This document shows, in pieces, positions 49,564 to 58,893 of a stretch of DNA of 64,000 nucleotides. The stretch's first letter is position 1. Every line of letters starts with the position of its first letter. The position numbers were made by a program, and so were the translations under genes. Source of the DNA: Lepidodermella squamata (Eukaryota; Animalia; Gastrotricha). The DNA lies in assembly GCA_047495785.1 (NCBI GenBank), contig JBLDXI010000010.1:2604001-2668000 (forward strand). The letters run 5' to 3'. The notes beneath the pieces were generated by a model. That model was not told where the DNA came from, ran no database searches, and saw only the letters and a list, made by a program, of their open reading frames with translations.

Positions 49564-49856
49564 TCATATACCCAAGAAAGAGAATTCGCCGCCATTCGAA
49601 GCACTAACTTTCTCAAGGATTCAGAAAGAATGGAAAAAGGTTGGAATCTGAGCTGGCACTTGCACATTGCGCATTGCAAAATTGGCGATGACTTGAGGGT
49701 GACAACTTTCGATCTAGCTTTGCAACTGCCTTTGCAGAGATTAACGTGACTATTCGAGGGTGCTTTTTCAAGCTTACAATGAGAGGCTTAGATAGAGGTT
49801 TCTCCCGGTTTTCTTTCACCTCTTTCTTCTTTCTTCTTTGTTCTTGCGTGTTTCAG

Positions 49857-50636
49857 ACGACTGCTACGAGCGTCAAGTTCGAGGACCTTAAGGCCCAGTC
49901 ATATTTCAAGGGCAGGGGCCATCTGCGAGGGGTCATCATTTACGTTTCTGACTGCCGGCGAGCGGGAGGCGGCGGCGATCACGACCGCGTGCTCAATGGA
50001 GTCTTGGTGATGTCGACCACCACTCGCGGCGCGTGCCTGCCGTTCGAGTGGTGGATGAAGAGCTCCGAGAACACGGTGTACCAGGAGCTGGCGATCGGTA
50101 GCCGTCTCCGGCTTCGGAACTTCAAGGTCATCGCAGGCGTCGTGCGGTCGTACGTTTGGGAGCCGTACGTCACCGACTTCCCGACGATGCTGCTGCCGCC
50201 GGGCCAGGTCAGCGACGTCATCACGCGTGGCCTGACGCTGACGATGTCGATGGCGAACAGCGTCGACATTATCGGGTCGCCTCTCGGCATCCTCGAGCTC
50301 GTGCCTCTGTCGTGGGTGCGCTTCACCGACGTCGAGGAGTGGGAGTGGGAATATGCGCACGCTGCCGCAAGCCCGCAGCAAAATCGGCGTGCTGCTATTC
50401 GACTCGCCGGCCGAGCGCATTTGTACTGCCGTTTCGCGAAGCTGGGCGGTGGCGGCCTCGTGTTGAAGCGCGCCGACGACATTGAGCCCAAGTCGGTAGG
50501 GCCGTTCGGGCAGCTGAACCAGCGAGCGGTGGTGTCGGGCAGCCAGTGGTGGCTGGAGAAGCCCAAGTCCGGCTTCCGGTACGCGGCCCGCCTGCAGACC
50601 GCCAGCAGCAGGAAAAGGCGCGTGAAAAGCGCGTGA
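49857..50636 (+). CDS. Orphan protein, OB-fold-like N-terminal region, basic C-terminus (259 codons after a strong acceptor; true start unresolved)
   Basis: GC3-rich open frame beginning exactly after a polypyrimidine tract and TTTCAG. The pattern FEDL..LRGVIIYVSD..VLVM..LPFEWW..ELAIGSRLRLRNFKV resembles OB-fold beta-strand periodicity; ends in RKRRVK. Confidence 0.55.
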   Translation, partial: TTATSVKFEDLKAQSYFKGRGHLRGVIIYVSDCRRAGGGGDHDRVLNGVLVMSTTTRGACLPFEWWMKSSENTVYQELAIGSRLRLRNFKVIAGVVRSYVWEPYVTDFPTMLLPPGQVSDVITRGLTLTMSMANSVDIIGSPLGILELVPLSWVRFTDVEEWEWEYAHAAASPQQNRRAAIRLAGRAHLYCRFAKLGGGGLVLKRADDIEPKSVGPFGQLNQRAVVSGSQWWLEKPKSGFRYAARLQTASSRKRRVKSA

Positions 50637-51277: not shown

Positions 51278-52434
51278 TATACATATGCAACGCTGTGTTG
51301 TATGCAGACATCTTGCTCTGCTTCTTTATATAGTTAGCAGTCTTTCAATGAGCAATAACAGTGTTGTTATTTCGTTGTACATATAATATGGCGAAACAAA
51401 GAACAACTGCCTCTATTCTTTGAGGCTACGGTTTCCGTGATTTGCGTAATATTTTGCTATTTAGACCTGATTATTGGTATTAGACCAGTTATTACTGCAA
51501 ATTAATGCACAGGCTTTTGTGCAAAAATTATAGCGAAAAACTATAGTGGAGTGGGAATCTAACTTAAAATTAGCCGAATAGCCAAAAGAAAGTTCTTCGA
51601 ACTTGAAACAACAACTTGAAACCCATTTCGCTTTTTATTTTTATGTTCCAGCTCTATCCAGCTCAAGCATGTTTTGCGCCGAAAAGATGTCGGCTCGTGT
51701 AAGCAGGCAGCCAATCAACAGTGACCTATAATAAAACCCAGATTGAAAAATTGTCAGTTGATGACCGTGAAATGTTCAGTTTTTTCAATGATACTCAAAA
51801 AGCCGCTATTTAAAAAGCTGGTTATAACGTCGAGGCTGATGCTTTTCAACGACAGTTACCTAATACTATCTAATAGTCTTGTGCATGTAATGAGTAAAAT
51901 CGCGTCTAGAAAACAATCGTGTCGTTTCGTGACATCAAAACGAGTTTTTAACAACCACCATCACTGCGTAGTAAAACGAGGCAATCATGTTCACTTTCAG
52001 GGCCACGTTTTTCACAATGAAACGGCGTCGGTGCGCCTGTGGCCATTGACACGAGCACGAAAATCCTTCATTCTCCATACTCTCTTTCGTCGGCGCCGCC
52101 GCTGATGCTGCTGCTGCTGAAATAAAACAGCGAATAAAAACGCGCGCTGAATGGGCGCGAAAAACAACGCGATTATGGCGCACACTCGCCGGTGCCACAA
52201 CTAGGCAATAAATAAAATAATAATCATCATCACCTGCCCTATATCGTCGTCGTCGCCGTAGTAGTAGTGGCGAGTGCGAACATCCGGTGCGCTCTCCACC
52301 TCTTATTGCACACACACAAATAAATCGCCATTTTTACACCTAGAAGCAGGGGCGCCGAGAATAATAACAATTTAAACAATTATTTTTTGCCCATATTAGT
52401 TTCATAATATCATCCTCGTATAAATGCGATTAAA

Positions 52435-55400
52435 ATGCGCATCCTCACTATTCTGCTGTCGGCGTTGTTAATCTACTGCTGGCGGGCGGTCGACGCGCAG
52501 TCGGCAGTTACTGGCGCCGCGTTGGGCGACGCCGTTCGACGCGGCGATGTCGACGCCGTCGGCGCCATGCTGGCGCAGCGGCCACACCTCGCCTCGTCGT
52601 TCATCGCCGGCTACGACGACGCGGACGGGGCGCAGCGGCAGCGCACCACGCCGCTGCACGTCGCCATCAAAGCCGACGACGTGGCGATGGCGAAGCTGCT
52701 CATCGAGCGAGGTGCCCACGTCGGCGTGGCGGATGGCGCCGGCGCGACGGCGCTGTCGTGGGCGGTGCGGCGCAACGCCTCGCTGCCGATGCTGGCGCTG
52801 CTGCTGAACCACGGCGCCGCCGAGCCGATGTTGCTCGAGCACCGCGACGGCGCCGGCAGGACGGCCCTGCAGACCGCTGTCACGAATGGCAACTCGGGCG
52901 CCGTTCGGCTGCTGCTGGGCGCCGGCGCCATGGCCGACGCCGCCGACGACGCCAACTGCTCGGCGCCGCTCAGCATGGCCGTGCAGCTGCGCGCCTCCGC
53001 CTCGCTGCTGTGCGCATCACTGAGCGGCGATTCGGCGGGGTTTGCGGCATGTCGGCGCCACCAGCAGGCCGTGTACCTCACAATTGGCGCCACTTTGATG
53101 CGACACGGCGCCGACCCGCACCGCGTCGACCCGTGCTCGATGCAGTCGCCGATGCAACTCGCCCTGCGCCTCGATGACACGCCCATGGTTGCACTGCTTG
53201 GCGGGGCGACGAATATCGATGAGCTATCAGCGCCGCCGGTAGTTCATCGTGTCAAGTCAATGTCGAACAACAACAACAACAGCCTACCTCGCGTCAACTT
53301 TCGCCAATTCCCTTCATTCGGTAAGTATTCGGTGATGGAATTTTTTGAAATTTCTATTAGCTGGTGAAGTTTTAGCCTTTTTGATTAGCATTAAATTGAC
53401 TCACACACGACTTGCGAACTTCCTTTTTTTATCAATTGTTTAGTGTAATGATTTTTCGCATATTCAGATTACTCTGAGGGTTAAGCTTTTGTTGAATTCG
53501 AAAAGCGGGCACTGGCCTGCACCTTTGGCCACTAAACTTACCTGGCACTGGGATGAGCCTCGATCACGAAGGGGGCCGCCCCAGGGCGAGGCGGGCCATT
53601 GCACTACGGCCCGCTGACCCCTGCGCTCTGCCTCATCGGTGGAGTCGGGTGCAAAATATTTCACTTGGGTACCGGCGTTCGCGCCACACCCGTAAATCAA
53701 TTGAAAAATACTTTGTAATTAGTTGAAAGAGATTCATCGAAAACTAGTATTATTACCAATTGCTAGTAATTAGTGCGCGCGCAATAGAATGTGCGTTGCT
53801 GTTTTTATGAGAGTGTGTCGCGCGCCGCGTTTTTATTGCTAACATTATTACCAAAGTTGCGTTTGCGCGGCGCGGCCGCATTTGCGGCGTTTATTACACA
53901 CCGCGATCGCGCGATTTCGGAAAAACAATTGTAAAGAGTAAATAGTAAAGAATAAAGATGATAAAGAAAGGAAAGAGTGGCCGAGAAATTCATATTAAAT
54001 CATTTCAGAATTGGTGCCGTTTTCGCGTTGTTCGAGCGGCGTTCGGAACCCAGGCGCGTTTTCGCAATCGGCGTCTTCATCGTCTTCATCGTCGTCGTCG
54101 TCGTCGTCGTCGTCGCATTCGGTGCCGCAACTCGGCTCGGTGCGGATGATAGGCGCGGAGGAGTGCGCGAGCGTGTGCGCCGACATCCCGGCCTGCTACG
54201 GCTTCAACCTGATGGTGTCGGCGACGGCGGGCGGCAACGGCGGCGGCTGCATCATCAAGGCGGCGCCGTGCCACCTCGAGCCAGACTCCATGTACGCCTT
54301 CTACCGCAAACGGCCCATCAATGCCAATGCAACTACTACGACGACGACAAGAAAGGGCAAAGTGACTGGGAAGATATCAACAACGCCACCTGCAGCAGCA
54401 GCAACAACAACAATAGCAACAGCAACTGAGGTTTTCTTTTAGATGAAGTCTGAATGGCGATTTTATGTCATTTCTTTGAACTACGATTTATAGGATTTAG
54501 CTCGAGTGTCCACATTGAGACCGAATACCCAGCAGCTGATACTCGGCCTGTCGAGCATGGTGGATAAGTCAGAACGTGGCGAAAACGGCAGTGCCTCATC
54601 ATCATCATCATCAGATCGAATCGTCGCAACACCGCCAGCATCAACGAACGAACTGCATCACGACTATCTGCGTGAGTGTTGCAATTGCCCTGAAACACAA
54701 CCTAGCCATCATAGATGTTTTTTGTTGAATAAAACTCCCTCAGCCCCTTTAGCCGGTGCTATGGTTCCACGCCTTACCCTAGACACTTCCATCTATCCGA
54801 ACGCGCCTTCCCCTTCGTTTCAGCATCCCTCTTCCTACCCTGCCCTACCGCCGCCTCAAGGTAACTAAATCGAAACCTAATCACATTGAATCCCATTTAA
54901 TCATCGTCACTATCATTAGGTGATGTTTCACCGGTGATTTTAGATGCGACGCGAGAGGAAGCGGGTGGCGGCGGCGGCGACGGGTGTGGCCGCGTGCCCT
55001 GGTACGGCTGGTTGTTGATTGGAGCCGGCGCCAGTCTGGCGGCATCCGCCATCGTGTTCACGTGCTTGTTTCGGCATTACAAGAAATCGCCTGATCGCGA
55101 CCGCACCAATGCCATGTTAGTTTTTGTTTCAATTTTCTCATATTCTTCATCAATGACGCAAATTGGCAATCGCAAGCCGGAACACTTTTCGAAATTTCAA
55201 GGTTTTCGCGATTTTGTTTCGTGGTACCGTCAGCAAGTGGTAAAAACTTTTCGATGCTGGCTACCTCTGACATTGATTTTTAAAATCAATCGAATTAGGC
55301 TTTGTGACTTTATAGGCAGAATAGTAAAAGATTCAGATTAAGAGGGCGAATTTTCCGCACTGTGCGGTTCTTCGTGCTGGAACCCTAAATTACCTACTTG

Positions 55401-56576
55401 TCACACCCAATATCAACATTCAAAATAATATCTGACCTGTTCACTGTTAAATCTCCCTACTTGAATTTTTTCTTTTTTTTGCATGGCAGGCGTGGTCATG
55501 ATAATGGCGGGCTGATGGCCGTTCATTCGATTGGCGAAATGTTTGCGCCAGAATTCAAGCACCAGCCTACGCCTAAGCTGGGCATTGCTAATACCAGTAG
55601 TAGTAGCGTGTACGAACCTCAGCCTGGTGTGGCCCGAAAACCGCCGACTGGTCGGCTGTTGTACGAGCCTATTAAAGCAGTACCAAGTAGCAATATCAGT
55701 AGCAATATGCAAGATCCATCCCATCAATTACCAGCGTCGATTGATTTCTCAGCGACGACGTGCTGGTCATCCGTGCCGAGTGCTAATAACAATGCCGATA
55801 ACGAGGATGGCGGCGGCGATGATGACGATGATGACAACGTGTTTCAACAACAACACCAATCACCTGCTAGCCCTGTGTTATCGATATCGAAACGCAGGGC
55901 GCCACTGCCACCTAATAACACTGCTGGTGGCGTATCGGCGCCGTCGTCTGCCGGCTCGGTTGAGAATAAGAAAAAGACGAAGAAGCGGCGTGTGAGCCGG
56001 AAATCGCGCGAGGAACAAGCAATAGCGCGTGACGCATCTTCGAACTCGCTGCCATCACTTGTTGCCGCGCCTACGACATCCGTGCTGCCTCCAATTCAGC
56101 AACATGCAACTGCTGCTGCTGCTGCTGCTGTGATGACAACGAATCGCCATTCGATAAAATCACTGCATAAAGTGTACGTCGACGGCATGGATGCGTTGGC
56201 GAGCAACAATACGTTGGAATCGGCGGCGGCGGAAGCGAAGCCAGCAGCAGCAGCATCATCACAACAACCAGTAGTAGCACCGGTTTGGTTATTTACAACC
56301 AGCACTGAAAATAACTGCTTCAATAGTGGTGGCGATGGTGGAGGTGGTGGTGAACAAGTTGACGAACAGCAGCAGAGATTACAAGATGTTGGTTATGATG
56401 AGCATGATGATGATAATAATATCAAGCCGGCAGCTGGCATCAACACCGATGAGCAGATGGTGGTGGACGAGCGGATAGAACGGCGGTTGTGCTGGTTGGA
56501 TGACGCTTGGGCGCGACGCAACGGCAAAATGGTGGCACAAAACAGCAACAACAAGAATAGCGGCAGCATATCTTGA
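52435..56576 (+). CDS. Type-I membrane protein: signal peptide + ankyrin repeats + PAN/Apple-like domain + Thr/Ser/Pro stalk + TM + disordered tail, ~961 aa; exons 52435-53320, 54009-54430, 54494-54671, 54744-54860, 54920-55115, 55490-56576
   Basis: MRILTILLSALLIYCWRAVDA signal; TPLHVA, TALSWA and TALQTA ankyrin repeats; EECASVCADIPACYGFN..GCIIK..C..YAFYRK; TM WLLIGAGASLAASAIVFTCLF followed by RHYKK. Five GT-AG introns join in frame (2886 nt). Confidence 0.75.
53534..53692 (+). ncRNA. U1: U1 snRNA (variant) inside intron 1 of the ankyrin-PAN gene
   Basis: 5' AAACTTACCTGG, SL1 loop GATCACGAAG (U1-70K site), SL2 loop ATTGCAC (U1A site), GCAC/GTGC closing helix, SL3, and terminal GGCG-TTCG-CGCC SL4. 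The Sm-site position reads AATATTTCA. Confidence 0.92.
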
Positions 56577-57363
56577 GATTTTTGTTACACCATCTCATCA
56601 TCATTACCGCTTTGTGATACACATTCATCTACTGATATAATTATTTATTGCCTATATACTACAACTACTACTGATATGAGATACTACAAAAAAATAAAAA
56701 TATGAAACAAAAAACATCATCGTGATGTGTGTAAAATGGCGGGGTTTTAACACCTACTGCTGCTGCTGCTTGTGCGGTTAAATGCTCGTTTTATGCGATG
56801 CCGCGTGTTTTTTCCCGCGTCTCTGTACATGCGTGTATTTTATTATTTGAATACACAGCCGCAGCCATCAACGTAGTAGACGTAGACCACGCGTAGTAGT
56901 TGAGACCGGTGTCCAGTGCATGCGCCCCCTCTGTGCCGCCGCCGCCGCCGTTGCCGTTGCCGTTGCCGTGCCTGGCAATAAACAGCCGCGGGCGACAAAA
57001 CGGCCGAGAGCCGAGAGAGCCGAGACAGCAGCAGTGGCGCCGCTTCACAGCCTACTACCTACCTACCCTACCTATGATGTGTGCAAAACCATTACTGCCG
57101 GTCACCATCATCATCATCATCGTTATTATTGCCTATTAAGCTGGTGGCGGTGTCAATGAACAAGGAGGACTTGAGAGATTTCGATCCAACTACTAGCTTA
57201 CACTAGTTACTAGCATACACACACACACACCCGCCGCTGTTCAATCTGATAATATCTCATCGTTTTCATTTCATTTCCTGTTCGTTTTTGCTTTTCATAT
57301 AGGCGGGTCGGGCTGATTAACTGACATTTCGATAATTAACTGATAAGCAGCAGATACTATATA

Positions 57364-58893
57364 ATGAGGAAGTGTAGTCGTGTCGTAGCCGCGGCCGTCG
57401 TCGTAGTCGCAATGTTCGGCGGGCAACACGCGCTCGCGCAGCAGCAGCAAGGCGCGAACCCGCTGTTTTGGGCGCAGAATTCCGGTGGTCTCGGCCAGAA
57501 CTTGTTCCTGAAGCCCGGCAGCGCCAACAACGCAGCCGCGAGCCAGCTGAAACTGCCCAGTGGCATGCAGCCGCTGCAGATGAACCAGCTCGGCCAGTTG
57601 GGCCAGATCGGCTCGTTCGGCTCGTTGAACAGCCTCGGCCAGCTTGGCAACGTCGCCGGCGCCGGCGCCGCCTCCAGCAGCGGCGCCAACAACAACAACG
57701 TGGCTGGCACGAATGCCAACGGCTTCTTCCTGCCCGCCATCACCAACTTGTGGGGCATGGGCAACCAGGCGGCCGTACCAGCCGTCGCCGGCGCCCCCGT
57801 CGTCCCGCCCATGCCCACGTTCGGCGACAACAAGTCACCCATCAGCACGGGCGCGTCGCTCGGCAGCCTGCGCATGCCGGCCCAGACGGCGCCCTACGTC
57901 CTGCCCGGCGCCGCTTCGTTCCCGGGCGCTGGCGCCCAGCAGCAGTGGCAGATGCCGCAGCTGGCGACGAATCCGTTCACGCAGATCGCCCAGTCACAGA
58001 TCCCCGGCATGGCTGCGGCGGCTGCTCCGGCCGTAGCTGCTGCTGCTCCGACGGCGCCCGTTCTCGCCTCGTCACCCATCGTTGGCGGCGCCGCTGGTGA
58101 GCAGCCGGTGGTGATGTTGTCCGCGCCCGCTTCCGCCGCCGCCCTGCCCATCTCGACCGGCACCGCCTTCCTGCCCGCCGGTGTTCAGAACGCCGCCGTT
58201 GCAGCCGACAGCGCCAAGCCGGCCGCTCTCGCCGCCGCCGCCGCCGCACCCGCCCCGGCCCCGGCGCCAGCACCCACTGCAGCACCCGCTCCCGCACCCA
58301 CGCAAGCCCCAGCAACTGAGGCGCCCGTTGTCGCCGCCGCCGCCGCCGCCGCCCCCGTCGCCCAGCCGAACCAGTTCAACATGAACTGGCTGCAGTCGGT
58401 GGTGCCGAACGTGCCCGGCCTGCGCCTCGGCCAGCCGCTCGCCTTCCAGCCGCCAGCCGTGCAGCCGCTGTTGCGCATGCCGACGCAGCCGCAGCAGACG
58501 GCGCCCGTGAACGGCGGCCAGCCGCTCGGCTCGCAGCCCCTCGCCGGTGTGCCGAATCCGGGCGCGTCCGTCGCCCAGGCTGCGGCCATGCAACCGCCGG
58601 CGCTCGGCATCCCGCAACTGCCGTCAATCCCATCTCTGGCGATGAACAACCAGAACTCGCAACAACAACAACAGCAGCAACAACAGCAACAGCCAGCTCA
58701 GCAACAGCAACAACAACAATCGCAACCTCAACAGCAGCAACAGCAGAATCAATTTTTCAATATGCGTAAGTCTCGATATAACGATTAGCATTTGCATTTT
58801 AAGAATTGTTCAACTTTGTTTTTCTCGATTTCAGAGAACAACTGGCTGCCACGATTCAGCAGCAGCAACCTATTCAACTCACCCGGATTTTAA
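57364..58893 (+). CDS. Secreted low-complexity Ala/Pro/Gln/Gly/Asn-rich protein A, ~486 aa, exons 57364-58765 and 58835-58893
   Basis: Signal peptide (VVAAAVVVVAMFGGQHALA/QQ), strong coding-type GC3 bias, no Cys in the mature part, phase-1 intron to a short terminal exon. Confidence 0.8.

Follow-up and report, generated by a model that had tools for sequence, protein, structure and literature searches.

A candidate single-pass surface protein with predicted extracellular ankyrin repeats in Lepidodermella squamata

Introduction

As a binding scaffold, the ankyrin repeat is the textbook case of one that works inside cells, and engineered ankyrin repeats (DARPins) perform well outside cells. Literature searches returned no surface receptor of an animal in which the natural ectodomain is made of ankyrin repeats. 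Here we describe a gene within the 64-kb stretch of Lepidodermella squamata DNA that was analysed (the window), the predicted product of which would place such a domain at the cell surface, and compare it with the closest described systems.

Like this product, Notch crosses the membrane once and unites ankyrin repeats with extracellular Cys-rich modules and a tail that bears a basic cluster. The ankyrin repeats of Notch are cytoplasmic, however, whereas here they are predicted to be luminal and to precede the membrane span, and the EGF, LNR and RAM elements are absent. In Toll/LRR receptors and in the variable lymphocyte receptors (VLRs) of lamprey, a repeat solenoid likewise serves as an outward binding surface on a stalk or anchor, but it is built from leucine-rich rather than ankyrin repeats, and the protein described here has neither a TIR domain nor a GPI anchor. 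Plant G-type lectin receptor kinases, apicomplexan MIC adhesins and nematode PAN-ZP proteins share a small, Cys-rich, extracellular, membrane-proximal module of PAN type. These PAN/Apple surface proteins are without ankyrin repeats. Here the module scores below the Pfam cut-offs and is accompanied by no kinase, lectin or ZP domain. The protein described here resembles the non-catalytic tyrosine-phosphorylated receptors, which are of the immunoreceptor type (single span, binding ectodomain, Tyr motifs in a tail that lacks a kinase domain), in its predicted type I arrangement, in the absence of an enzyme domain from its tail, and in its two closely spaced Tyr motifs, of which one fits the ITIM pattern. 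Their ectodomains are of the Ig or lectin kind instead of an ankyrin solenoid; here the spacing and residues of an ITAM are lacking, and the motifs are mostly at chance level. Finally, ankyrin repeats leave the producing cell in the secreted ankyrin (ANK) effectors of oomycetes (PMC11139960), in bacterial Ank effectors and in alpha-latrotoxin. The effectors act inside the host cell and alpha-latrotoxin forms pores, and none of them is anchored in the membrane of the producing animal as a receptor.

Gene structure and transcript evidence

Six exons, separated by introns of 688, 63, 72, 59 and 374 nt that are all GT..AG, join into a single 961-aa open reading frame (positions 52435-56576, 2886-nt CDS) with a lone terminal stop, as a preliminary description of this DNA had proposed (Table 1). 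Use of an alternative acceptor at 54753 would give a product of 958 aa. The sole in-frame splice model supports a predicted architecture of signal peptide, ankyrin repeats, PAN-like module, stalk, membrane span and tail, and on balance we regard one gene, encoding a type I single-pass surface glycoprotein with an ankyrin ectodomain, as the probable reading of the locus. Exon shuffling, which had been suggested as its origin, finds no basis in the gene structure: the ankyrin repeats and the signal-peptide-like segment lie in the same exon, and the PAN exon has phases 1-0, i.e. it is asymmetrical.

Table 1. Positions of the features of the locus within the window
Feature	Position	Strand	Basis
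Exons	52435-53320, 54009-54430, 54494-54671, 54744-54860, 54920-55115, 55490-56576	+	
Start ATG with signal-peptide-like stretch, aa 1-21	52435..52497	+	hydropathy
Ankyrin-repeat domain, six repeats, aa 22-265	52498..53229	+	Pfam, AF2, Foldseek
Exon 1 end: disordered Asn-rich linker, then donor TCG|GTAAGT	53230..53320	+	AF2, donor sequence
Intron 1 (inferred), phase 1, 688 nt, 3' end TTTCAG	53321..54008	+	in-frame model
Full-length U1 snRNA copy within intron 1	53534..53693	+	Rfam RF00003
Exon 2: C303 linker with poly-Ser run, PAN-like module, start of Thr-rich stalk	54009..54430	+	
PAN/Apple-like Cys core, aa 341-398	54143..54316	+	Pfam below cut-off, ESM Atlas
Exon 3: Ser/Thr/Pro-rich stalk	54494..54671	+	in-frame model, cDNA-like piece ends
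Exon 4: Pro-rich stalk	54744..54860	+	cDNA-like piece, exon 4|5 junction
Exon 5: Gly run with C557 next to the membrane, the span itself, RHYKK	54920..55115	+	hydropathy, junction
Membrane span, aa 561-586	54997..55074	+	hydropathy
Exon 6: low-complexity tail of 375 aa (predicted cytoplasmic) and stop codon	55490..56576	+	
Tail YEP motif SVYEPQ (Y641)	55605-55622	+	
Tail YEP motif LLYEPI (Y658)	55656-55673	+	
Tail RRAPLPP	55893-55913	+	
Tail basic cluster	55968-56009	+	
AATAAA poly(A) signal in 3' UTR	56693..56698	+	

Exons 3-6 are expressed and spliced. The junction between exons 4 and 5 is directly visible in one low-depth cDNA-like run, in which a 28-nt loose end is the exact 54860|54920 junction, a sequence absent from the genomic DNA. 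Splicing of introns 3 and 5 fits the same run, because its pieces have boundaries at 54671, 54744 and 55116 and its fold-back distances reach the usual 85-127 nt only once these two introns are removed. One cDNA-like contig spans 54272-54331 within exon 2, and coverage continues to ~56731, ending in the bin 56538-56731 near the AATAAA. The preliminary description had named RNA reads over 53320|54009 and the downstream junctions as a check on the model; the downstream part stands in this way for exons 3-6, while 53320|54009 has no RNA reads.

Ankyrin-repeat domain

The domain at the N-terminal side, earlier put at about five to six ankyrin repeats, has six. Pfam identifies it as Ank_2 (E 6.1e-20, 72 bits, cut-off 27.3) and Ank (E 2.4e-16, 59.4 bits, cut-off 21.1), with Ank_3, Ank_4 and Ank_5 also matched. 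The AF2 model contains six helix pairs (pLDDT 83.9, pTM 0.80), those of repeat 5 being elongated, and falls below a pLDDT of 50 in the linker that follows (mature residues 244-274). When this model was searched with Foldseek, the best PDB matches were all ankyrin proteins (E down to 9e-8), including Bcl-3, IkB and bacterial ankyrin proteins.

Two sequons, NAS (N114) and NCS (N174), occur in the domain, and Cys 175, 193, 206 and 234 lie in repeats 5-6. Sequons and "extra" Cys had been read as signs of a luminal location. Both are present, but at chance level, and are no evidence for that location: sequon enrichment is absent (P 0.12), and a count of four Cys per 244 aa is unremarkable.

GC3 is 0.84-0.95 in the ankyrin domain and the PAN-like module, 0.73-0.85 in HSP90 exons and 0.80 in the neighbouring gene. 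Since its GC3 matches this high norm of the genome, exon 1 is native coding sequence. A foreign origin of the ankyrin exon, by horizontal transfer or contamination, was considered and dropped, a GC3 of 0.84 being normal for the genome.

Cysteine-rich module and stalk

The module encoded by exon 2 has five Cys in the pattern C-x3-C-x5-C-x17-C-x6-C (C348, C352, C358, C376 and C383, a 36-residue core), and C303 lies 45 residues 5' of this core with a poly-Ser run in between. The pattern typical of the PAN core, C-x3-C-x5/6-C ... C-x-[LI]-K, is found as C348-x3-C352-x5-C358-x17-C376-I-I-K, and a Gly-rich insert widens the gap between the fourth and fifth Cys. PAN families are the sole Pfam matches to the module, all of them under the gathering cut-offs: PAN_2 and PAN_4 at E 0.014 and 15.9 bits (cut-offs 21.1 and 27), and PAN_1 at E 0.11 and 12.8 bits (cut-off 21.4). 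In a feature search of the ESM Atlas the closest clusters are also PAN (0.93 and 0.92). A single-sequence AF2 model is unusable (pLDDT 39), although the order of helix and strands in it fits PAN. The assignment is thus a sub-threshold one, and of the six-Cys PAN/Apple module described earlier the core pattern and the exclusively PAN matches stand, but with five Cys and a distant C303.

A Ser/Asn linker separates the ankyrin domain from this module. In the linker and the stalk, Ser, Thr and Pro together make up 35-43% of the residues, which agrees with the earlier designation of the stalk as mucin-like.

Proposed joining of exons 1 and 2

We infer the 53320|54009 join from the in-frame splice model, because exon 2 has no usable start of its own and exon 1 ends in a consensus donor in the phase that matches exon 2. 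The frame of exon 2 is interrupted by a TAA at 53996-98, four codons ahead of the acceptor, its first Met is M342, which is without a signal peptide, and the stretch from 53321 to 54008 was found to offer no other exon that could come first and encode a signal peptide; on these grounds exon 2 must be internal.

The same observations weigh against the best-surviving alternative, which we consider unlikely, namely that there are two genes. Exon 1, read through to a stop at 53365-67, would then encode a 310-aa secreted ankyrin protein, followed by a U1 snRNA gene, and the PAN-like module, stalk, membrane span and tail would belong to a separate gene that has its 5' exon with a signal peptide elsewhere or that leaves exon 1 out. 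In that arrangement the ankyrin repeats, though again extracellular, would form no part of a receptor. An ATTAAA at 53390, 25 nt past the unspliced stop, speaks for such an arrangement, as does the U1 copy, which lies on the same strand in the gap between the two exons. This copy (109 bits, E 1.6e-27) is one of many in the genome, with a DNA-run depth of ~2900-4000 vs ~47 in its flanks. A further point in favour is that the cDNA-like run spans exons 2-6 and not exon 1, and a run search with exon 1 alone found it in the DNA run only. This absence of coverage is uninformative, however, because in the single low-depth run the first half of exon 2 (54016-54209), necessarily transcribed, is equally bare, and depth declines steadily toward the 5' end. 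Besides the lack of a candidate signal-peptide first exon in 53321-54008, the impossibility of beginning translation of exon 2 before M342, and the consensus donor in correct phase, two genes are also disfavoured by the neighbouring upstream gene on the + strand, which already terminates at 50636.

N-terminus and topology

If the exons form one gene, the topology of the product depends on the two hydrophobic segments that a hydropathy analysis of the 961-aa model finds, aa 1-21 and ~561-586. The first has the signal-peptide-like layout that had been noted before: judged by eye, n, h and c regions are followed by V-D-A ahead of Q22, with small residues at -3 and -1, and cleavage would probably occur after A21. 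The N-terminus is not extendable, because an in-frame TAA (52405-07) lies 10 codons 5' of the ATG with no AG acceptor in between. At the ATG (52435), GC3 jumps to ~0.86 after AT-rich DNA. The second segment, with a Kyte-Doolittle peak of 2.08 at aa 566, is followed by RHYKK, so that the single transmembrane span with a positive flank is also borne out. As no membrane span lies between them, the ankyrin repeats and the Cys-rich module would be on the same, luminal side.

Two short elements are found just 5' of the start, an out-of-frame ATG in good context at 52424 and a TATAAA at 52420-25, immediately 5' of ATG 52435. Were the start of transcription or translation shifted by either of them, the product would begin at Met45, without its signal peptide. 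It is thus conceivable, although improbable in our view, that the exons are joined and the N-terminal stretch is not a cleaved signal peptide, through a Met45 start or as an uncleaved anchor, with a different topology. The TATAAA would set the start site 3' of the ATG, and the upstream ATG would add to the case, but the codon bias begins exactly at ATG 52435, the n/h/c layout carries V and A at -3 and -1, and a Cys-rich PAN-like module with a Ser/Thr-rich stalk would be implausible in the cytosol. With an uncleaved anchor, moreover, the ankyrin and PAN-like domains would in any case stay luminal, between two spans.

Least credible is a third alternative, in which exon 1 would be a gene fragment that is silent or in decay, or the join an assembly artefact over the multi-copy U1, so that no such protein exists. 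Short-read DNA contigs do break at the U1 copy and the poly-Ser repeat, and exons 1 and 2 are not connected by any independent contig. Exon 1 is nevertheless an open frame of 295 codons that shows the codon bias of the genome and an intact ankyrin fold, and the U1 repeat covers only ~175 nt with unique flanks on both sides in the same window.

Related sequences

Searches of sequences and literature, with individual exons and modules as queries, returned no relative or published family with the ankyrin-PAN-transmembrane layout, in keeping with the earlier statement that no described animal receptor family is known to combine ankyrin and PAN in this way. A word search with the ankyrin exon gave generic ankyrin proteins only (162-516 aa, at most 41% identity); the window's own protein was not among them, and none had a PAN family. 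Among the best 150 of 91,833 matches in an exhaustive search of representative sequences there were giant ankyrin arrays only (5-27 stretches each), and no self or near-self match was among the matches listed. Because such multi-repeat arrays fill the top matches, a diverged orthologue of this exon would be swamped. When ankyrin families were excluded from the Atlas search, unnamed ankyrin-like clusters were all that the exon matched. For the PAN-like module the word search and the PDB sequence search were both empty, and the tail had no match in Pfam or the Atlas. Pfam finds no Sushi, EGF or protease modules in any exon, and tblastn finds no paralogues within the window.

Possible mode of action

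For the single-gene receptor, the following sequence of events may be envisaged. The signal peptide would bring the N-terminus into the ER and probably be cleaved, leaving the six-repeat ankyrin solenoid as the membrane-distal tip outside the cell. Next would come the Ser-rich linker, a small and possibly disulfide-bonded PAN-like module, and the Ser/Thr/Pro-rich stalk, probably O-glycosylated, and then the one membrane span and the disordered cytoplasmic tail. The ankyrin groove, perhaps together with the PAN-like module, could bind an extracellular protein or glycan ligand, and clustering would then allow cytoplasmic kinases to phosphorylate both YEP tyrosines. These, together with the proline motif RRAPLPP, may recruit SH2/SH3 adaptors, as in receptors without an enzymatic domain of their own.

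A membrane-anchored ankyrin receptor with a signalling-type tail would, if true, mean that evolution has taken the step that protein engineers also took, and it would offer a testable entry point, with its ligand, its disulfide stabilisation and its signalling as subjects of study. A more far-reaching idea, which we regard as distinctly doubtful, is that in this animal ankyrin solenoids have been co-opted genome-wide as extracellular recognition scaffolds, comparable to the leucine-rich repeats of lamprey VLRs. The gene described here would then provide such a system with an arm for signalling, anchored in the membrane, that couples an outward ankyrin surface to YEP phosphotyrosine signalling.

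Motifs of the tail

The low-complexity tail is close to the ~380 aa given earlier. SVYEPQ and the ITIM-like LLYEPI are both present as had been described, but the likeness to an ITIM is at chance level: with the pattern taken as [SIVL]xYxx[IVL], LLYEPI is the only match, at P 0.16 when the tail is shuffled. An ITAM (YxxL/I, 6-12 residues, YxxL/I) is not formed, as the two motifs read YEPQ-13 residues-YEPI, which is too wide a spacing, and the first is without L/I. YxxQ and SH3 motifs are likewise each at chance level. YEP itself occurs twice in the tail vs 0.015 expected, and this doubled YEP, unlike the resemblance to an ITIM, the sequons or the number of Cys, is non-random, the sole motif of the protein to be so.

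Gene model and transcript evidence

The protein predicted from the gene at 52435-56576 would be a mosaic single-pass receptor carrying a module unusual on the outside, an ankyrin-repeat domain. When the gene model was rebuilt from the sequence, the six exons joined in frame as the preliminary description had proposed, giving one open reading frame of 2886 nt (961 aa) whose sole stop is terminal. An alternative acceptor at 54753 also keeps the frame (958 aa); in both other exon combinations tried the frame was lost. All five introns are GT..AG, and four of them are AT-rich, with a GC content of 0.30-0.40 (0.44 in intron 1), against 0.52-0.68 in the exons. The first donor, TCG/GTAAGT, is a consensus site, and the first acceptor is TTTCAG.

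Features of the gene and its surroundings
Feature	Position	Strand	Remarks
Exon 1	52435-53320	+	in-frame join
Exon 2	54009-54430	+	in-frame join
Exon 3	54494-54671	+	in-frame join
Exon 4	54744-54860	+	in-frame join
Exon 5	54920-55115	+	in-frame join
Exon 6	55490-56576	+	in-frame join
U1 snRNA copy	53534-53693	+	full-length; inside inferred intron 1, same strand as host gene; Rfam 109 bits
Neighbouring ORF	57364-58788	+	single exon, 474 aa; signal-peptide-like N-terminus; low-complexity body extremely rich in Gln/Ala/Pro; GC3 0.80
Upstream ORF	49746-50636	+	296 aa; hydrophobic N-terminus; without Pfam match

The RNA evidence comes from one cDNA-like run, X1, which is flagged 'RNA?' and made up of short fold-back contigs at low depth; 43 of its 57 pieces are at least 99% identical. 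Coverage includes 54272-54331 and then exons 3-6 up to ~56731, just beyond an AATAAA at 56693, and midway through intron 5 the depth is ~10-fold lower. One loose end is the letter-for-letter reverse complement of the 54860/54920 junction, a 28-mer absent from the genomic sequence, and pieces end exactly at 54671, 54744 and 55116. Four fold-backs across introns 3 and 5 span 152, 497, 459 and 463 nt, or 80, 123, 85 and 89 nt when intron-free; only without the introns do they match, or nearly match, the 85-127 nt seen in the other fold-backs. Together, the junction 28-mer, piece ends, fold-back distances and coverage support the 3' end as well as introns 3, 4 and 5.

Nearly all X1 contigs (54586-56617) are fold-back chimeras in which opposite strands are joined ~85-127 nt apart. 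It seems to be a library artefact, one to bear in mind when junctions are read from this run. One contig lies wholly within intron 5 (55344-55452), and therefore either some transcripts retain this intron or some DNA is present in the run. At 55472, the poly-T tract within intron 5 is also longer by one T in X1.

One gene or two

It is likely that exon 1 is joined to exon 2 at 53320/54009. We infer this join because a TAA closes the frame 4 codons ahead of where exon 2 is accepted, M342, the earliest Met in that exon, is inside the Cys-rich module and without a signal peptide, intron 1 contains no other candidate first exon that would supply a signal peptide, the exon 1 donor is consensus and phase-matched to exon 2, and the upstream ORF terminates at its stop at 50636. 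Counting against it, the unspliced frame of exon 1 stops at 53365-67 with an ATTAAA next at 53390, and intron 1 holds a full-length U1 copy. X1 covers neither exon 1 nor 54016-54209. Since the latter must belong to the transcript, and a depth of 17 at the 3' end has dwindled to 1.6 by exon 2, the missing coverage of exon 1 is uninformative rather than negative.

DNA-run depth at the U1 copy is ~60-85x that of the flanks. Just beyond ~53521-53697 the other U1 copies diverge, so the dispersed, multi-copy U1 segment is roughly 175 nt long.

Predicted extracellular domains

The ankyrin repeats seen in the preliminary description are genuine. Exon 1 matches Ank_2 in Pfam (E 6.1e-20) plus four more Ank families above cut-off; AlphaFold2 with a 36-sequence alignment predicted with confidence a solenoid made up of six helix pairs (pLDDT 83.9, pTM 0.80), with disorder beyond mature position 243, and Foldseek matched this model to ankyrin structures only. 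Sequons and extra cysteines had been read as consistent with a luminal location, but their counts are no evidence of one: two sequons were observed against 0.64 expected (P 0.12), and an ankyrin domain of 244 residues with four Cys is nothing out of the ordinary. Their positions suggest two possible disulfides: C193-C206, which would bridge the elongated hairpin of helices in repeat 5, and C175-C234, which would link the loops preceding repeats 5 and 6.

With the ankyrin exon as query, neither a word search nor an exhaustive representative search found a self match or orthologue, the latter search being dominated by giant ankyrin arrays that could hide a diverged orthologue. Among the word-search matches listed, none had a PAN family. 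In the literature searched, no animal receptor was reported to carry ankyrin repeats outside the cell; the phrase 'extracellular ankyrin' occurred in one latrotoxin review, and 'secreted ankyrin' led to microbial effectors only, including oomycete ANK effectors.

The Cys-rich module of exon 2 is, with good confidence, PAN-like. The PAN/Apple assignment stands as to its core pattern, C-x3-C-x5-C...C-I-I-K, and as to the nearest clusters in an ESM Atlas feature search, which are PAN (0.93 and 0.92), but not as to Pfam, where the only matches (PAN_2 and PAN_4, both E 0.014; PAN_1, E 0.11) are below cut-offs. Sequence search found no homologue of the module for an alignment, and AlphaFold2 from the single sequence gave a pLDDT of 39. 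Ser, Thr and Pro make up 35-43% of the linker and stalk.

The ankyrin domain has a GC3 of 0.83-0.95 and the PAN-like core one of 0.92, whereas the stalk and tail, both disordered, are at ~0.45-0.5. Genes here normally have a high GC3 (HSP90 exons 0.73-0.85, neighbouring gene 0.80), so exon 1 is native and a foreign origin is ruled out.

Predicted membrane topology

Hydropathy of the predicted protein shows two hydrophobic segments only, aa 1-21 and ~561-586; RHYKK follows the second. In the first, a basic n-region precedes a 14-residue hydrophobic core, with V at -3 and A at -1 relative to Q22. The frame cannot reach further upstream, since a TAA in phase at 52405-07 closes it and no AG follows that stop before the ATG, and GC3 jumps to ~0.86 exactly at the ATG at 52435, after AT-rich DNA. 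Caveats for this start are a TATAAA at 52420 and an out-of-frame ATG at 52424. It is therefore topology that makes the case for luminal ankyrin repeats: a predicted N-terminal signal comes first, the repeats are not separated from the Cys-rich module by any span, and a span follows the stalk. Sequons and cysteines carry no weight in it, as these are at or near chance or ordinary.

The membrane span (54997-55074) has a small-residue run, G-A-G-A-S-L-A-A-S, with C583 at its cytoplasmic end and C557 just outside the membrane; these may be sites of helix packing, palmitoylation and covalent dimerisation. Counting C557, the ectodomain's Cys total is odd, at 11.

A type I surface glycoprotein with the ankyrin domain distal and the tail as a docking platform is a moderately likely reading. 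The solenoid would be the distal binding surface, held away from the membrane by the PAN-like module and stalk, and partners would dock on the tail via two YEP tyrosines and a proline motif. The preliminary description is confirmed in its sequence observation and partly supported in its interpretation; its proposal of exon shuffling is not supported, with signal peptide and ankyrin repeats on one exon and a PAN exon of phase 1-0.

Predicted cytoplasmic tail and neighbouring ORFs

The 474-aa ORF has a sole Pfam match, IPP-2, which is sub-threshold (E 0.0011) and probably compositional. The 296-aa ORF is overlapped by long antisense ORFs, so the + strand is only a putative coding strand there.

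The tail is 375 aa long, close to the ~380 first estimated, and has no family match in Pfam or the ESM Atlas. The ITIM-like LLYEPI highlighted earlier is at or near chance (P 0.16), as are YxxQ (P 0.24), RRAPLPP (P 0.18) and a basic cluster (P 0.11). YEP occurs twice, 17 residues apart, where 0.015 is expected, and none of 5000 shuffles reached two; the doubling is non-random and suggests that a short linear motif was duplicated. In the Ala-Ser-Ser-Gln stretch of the tail (~aa 854), X1 shows an in-frame CAT insertion at 56253.
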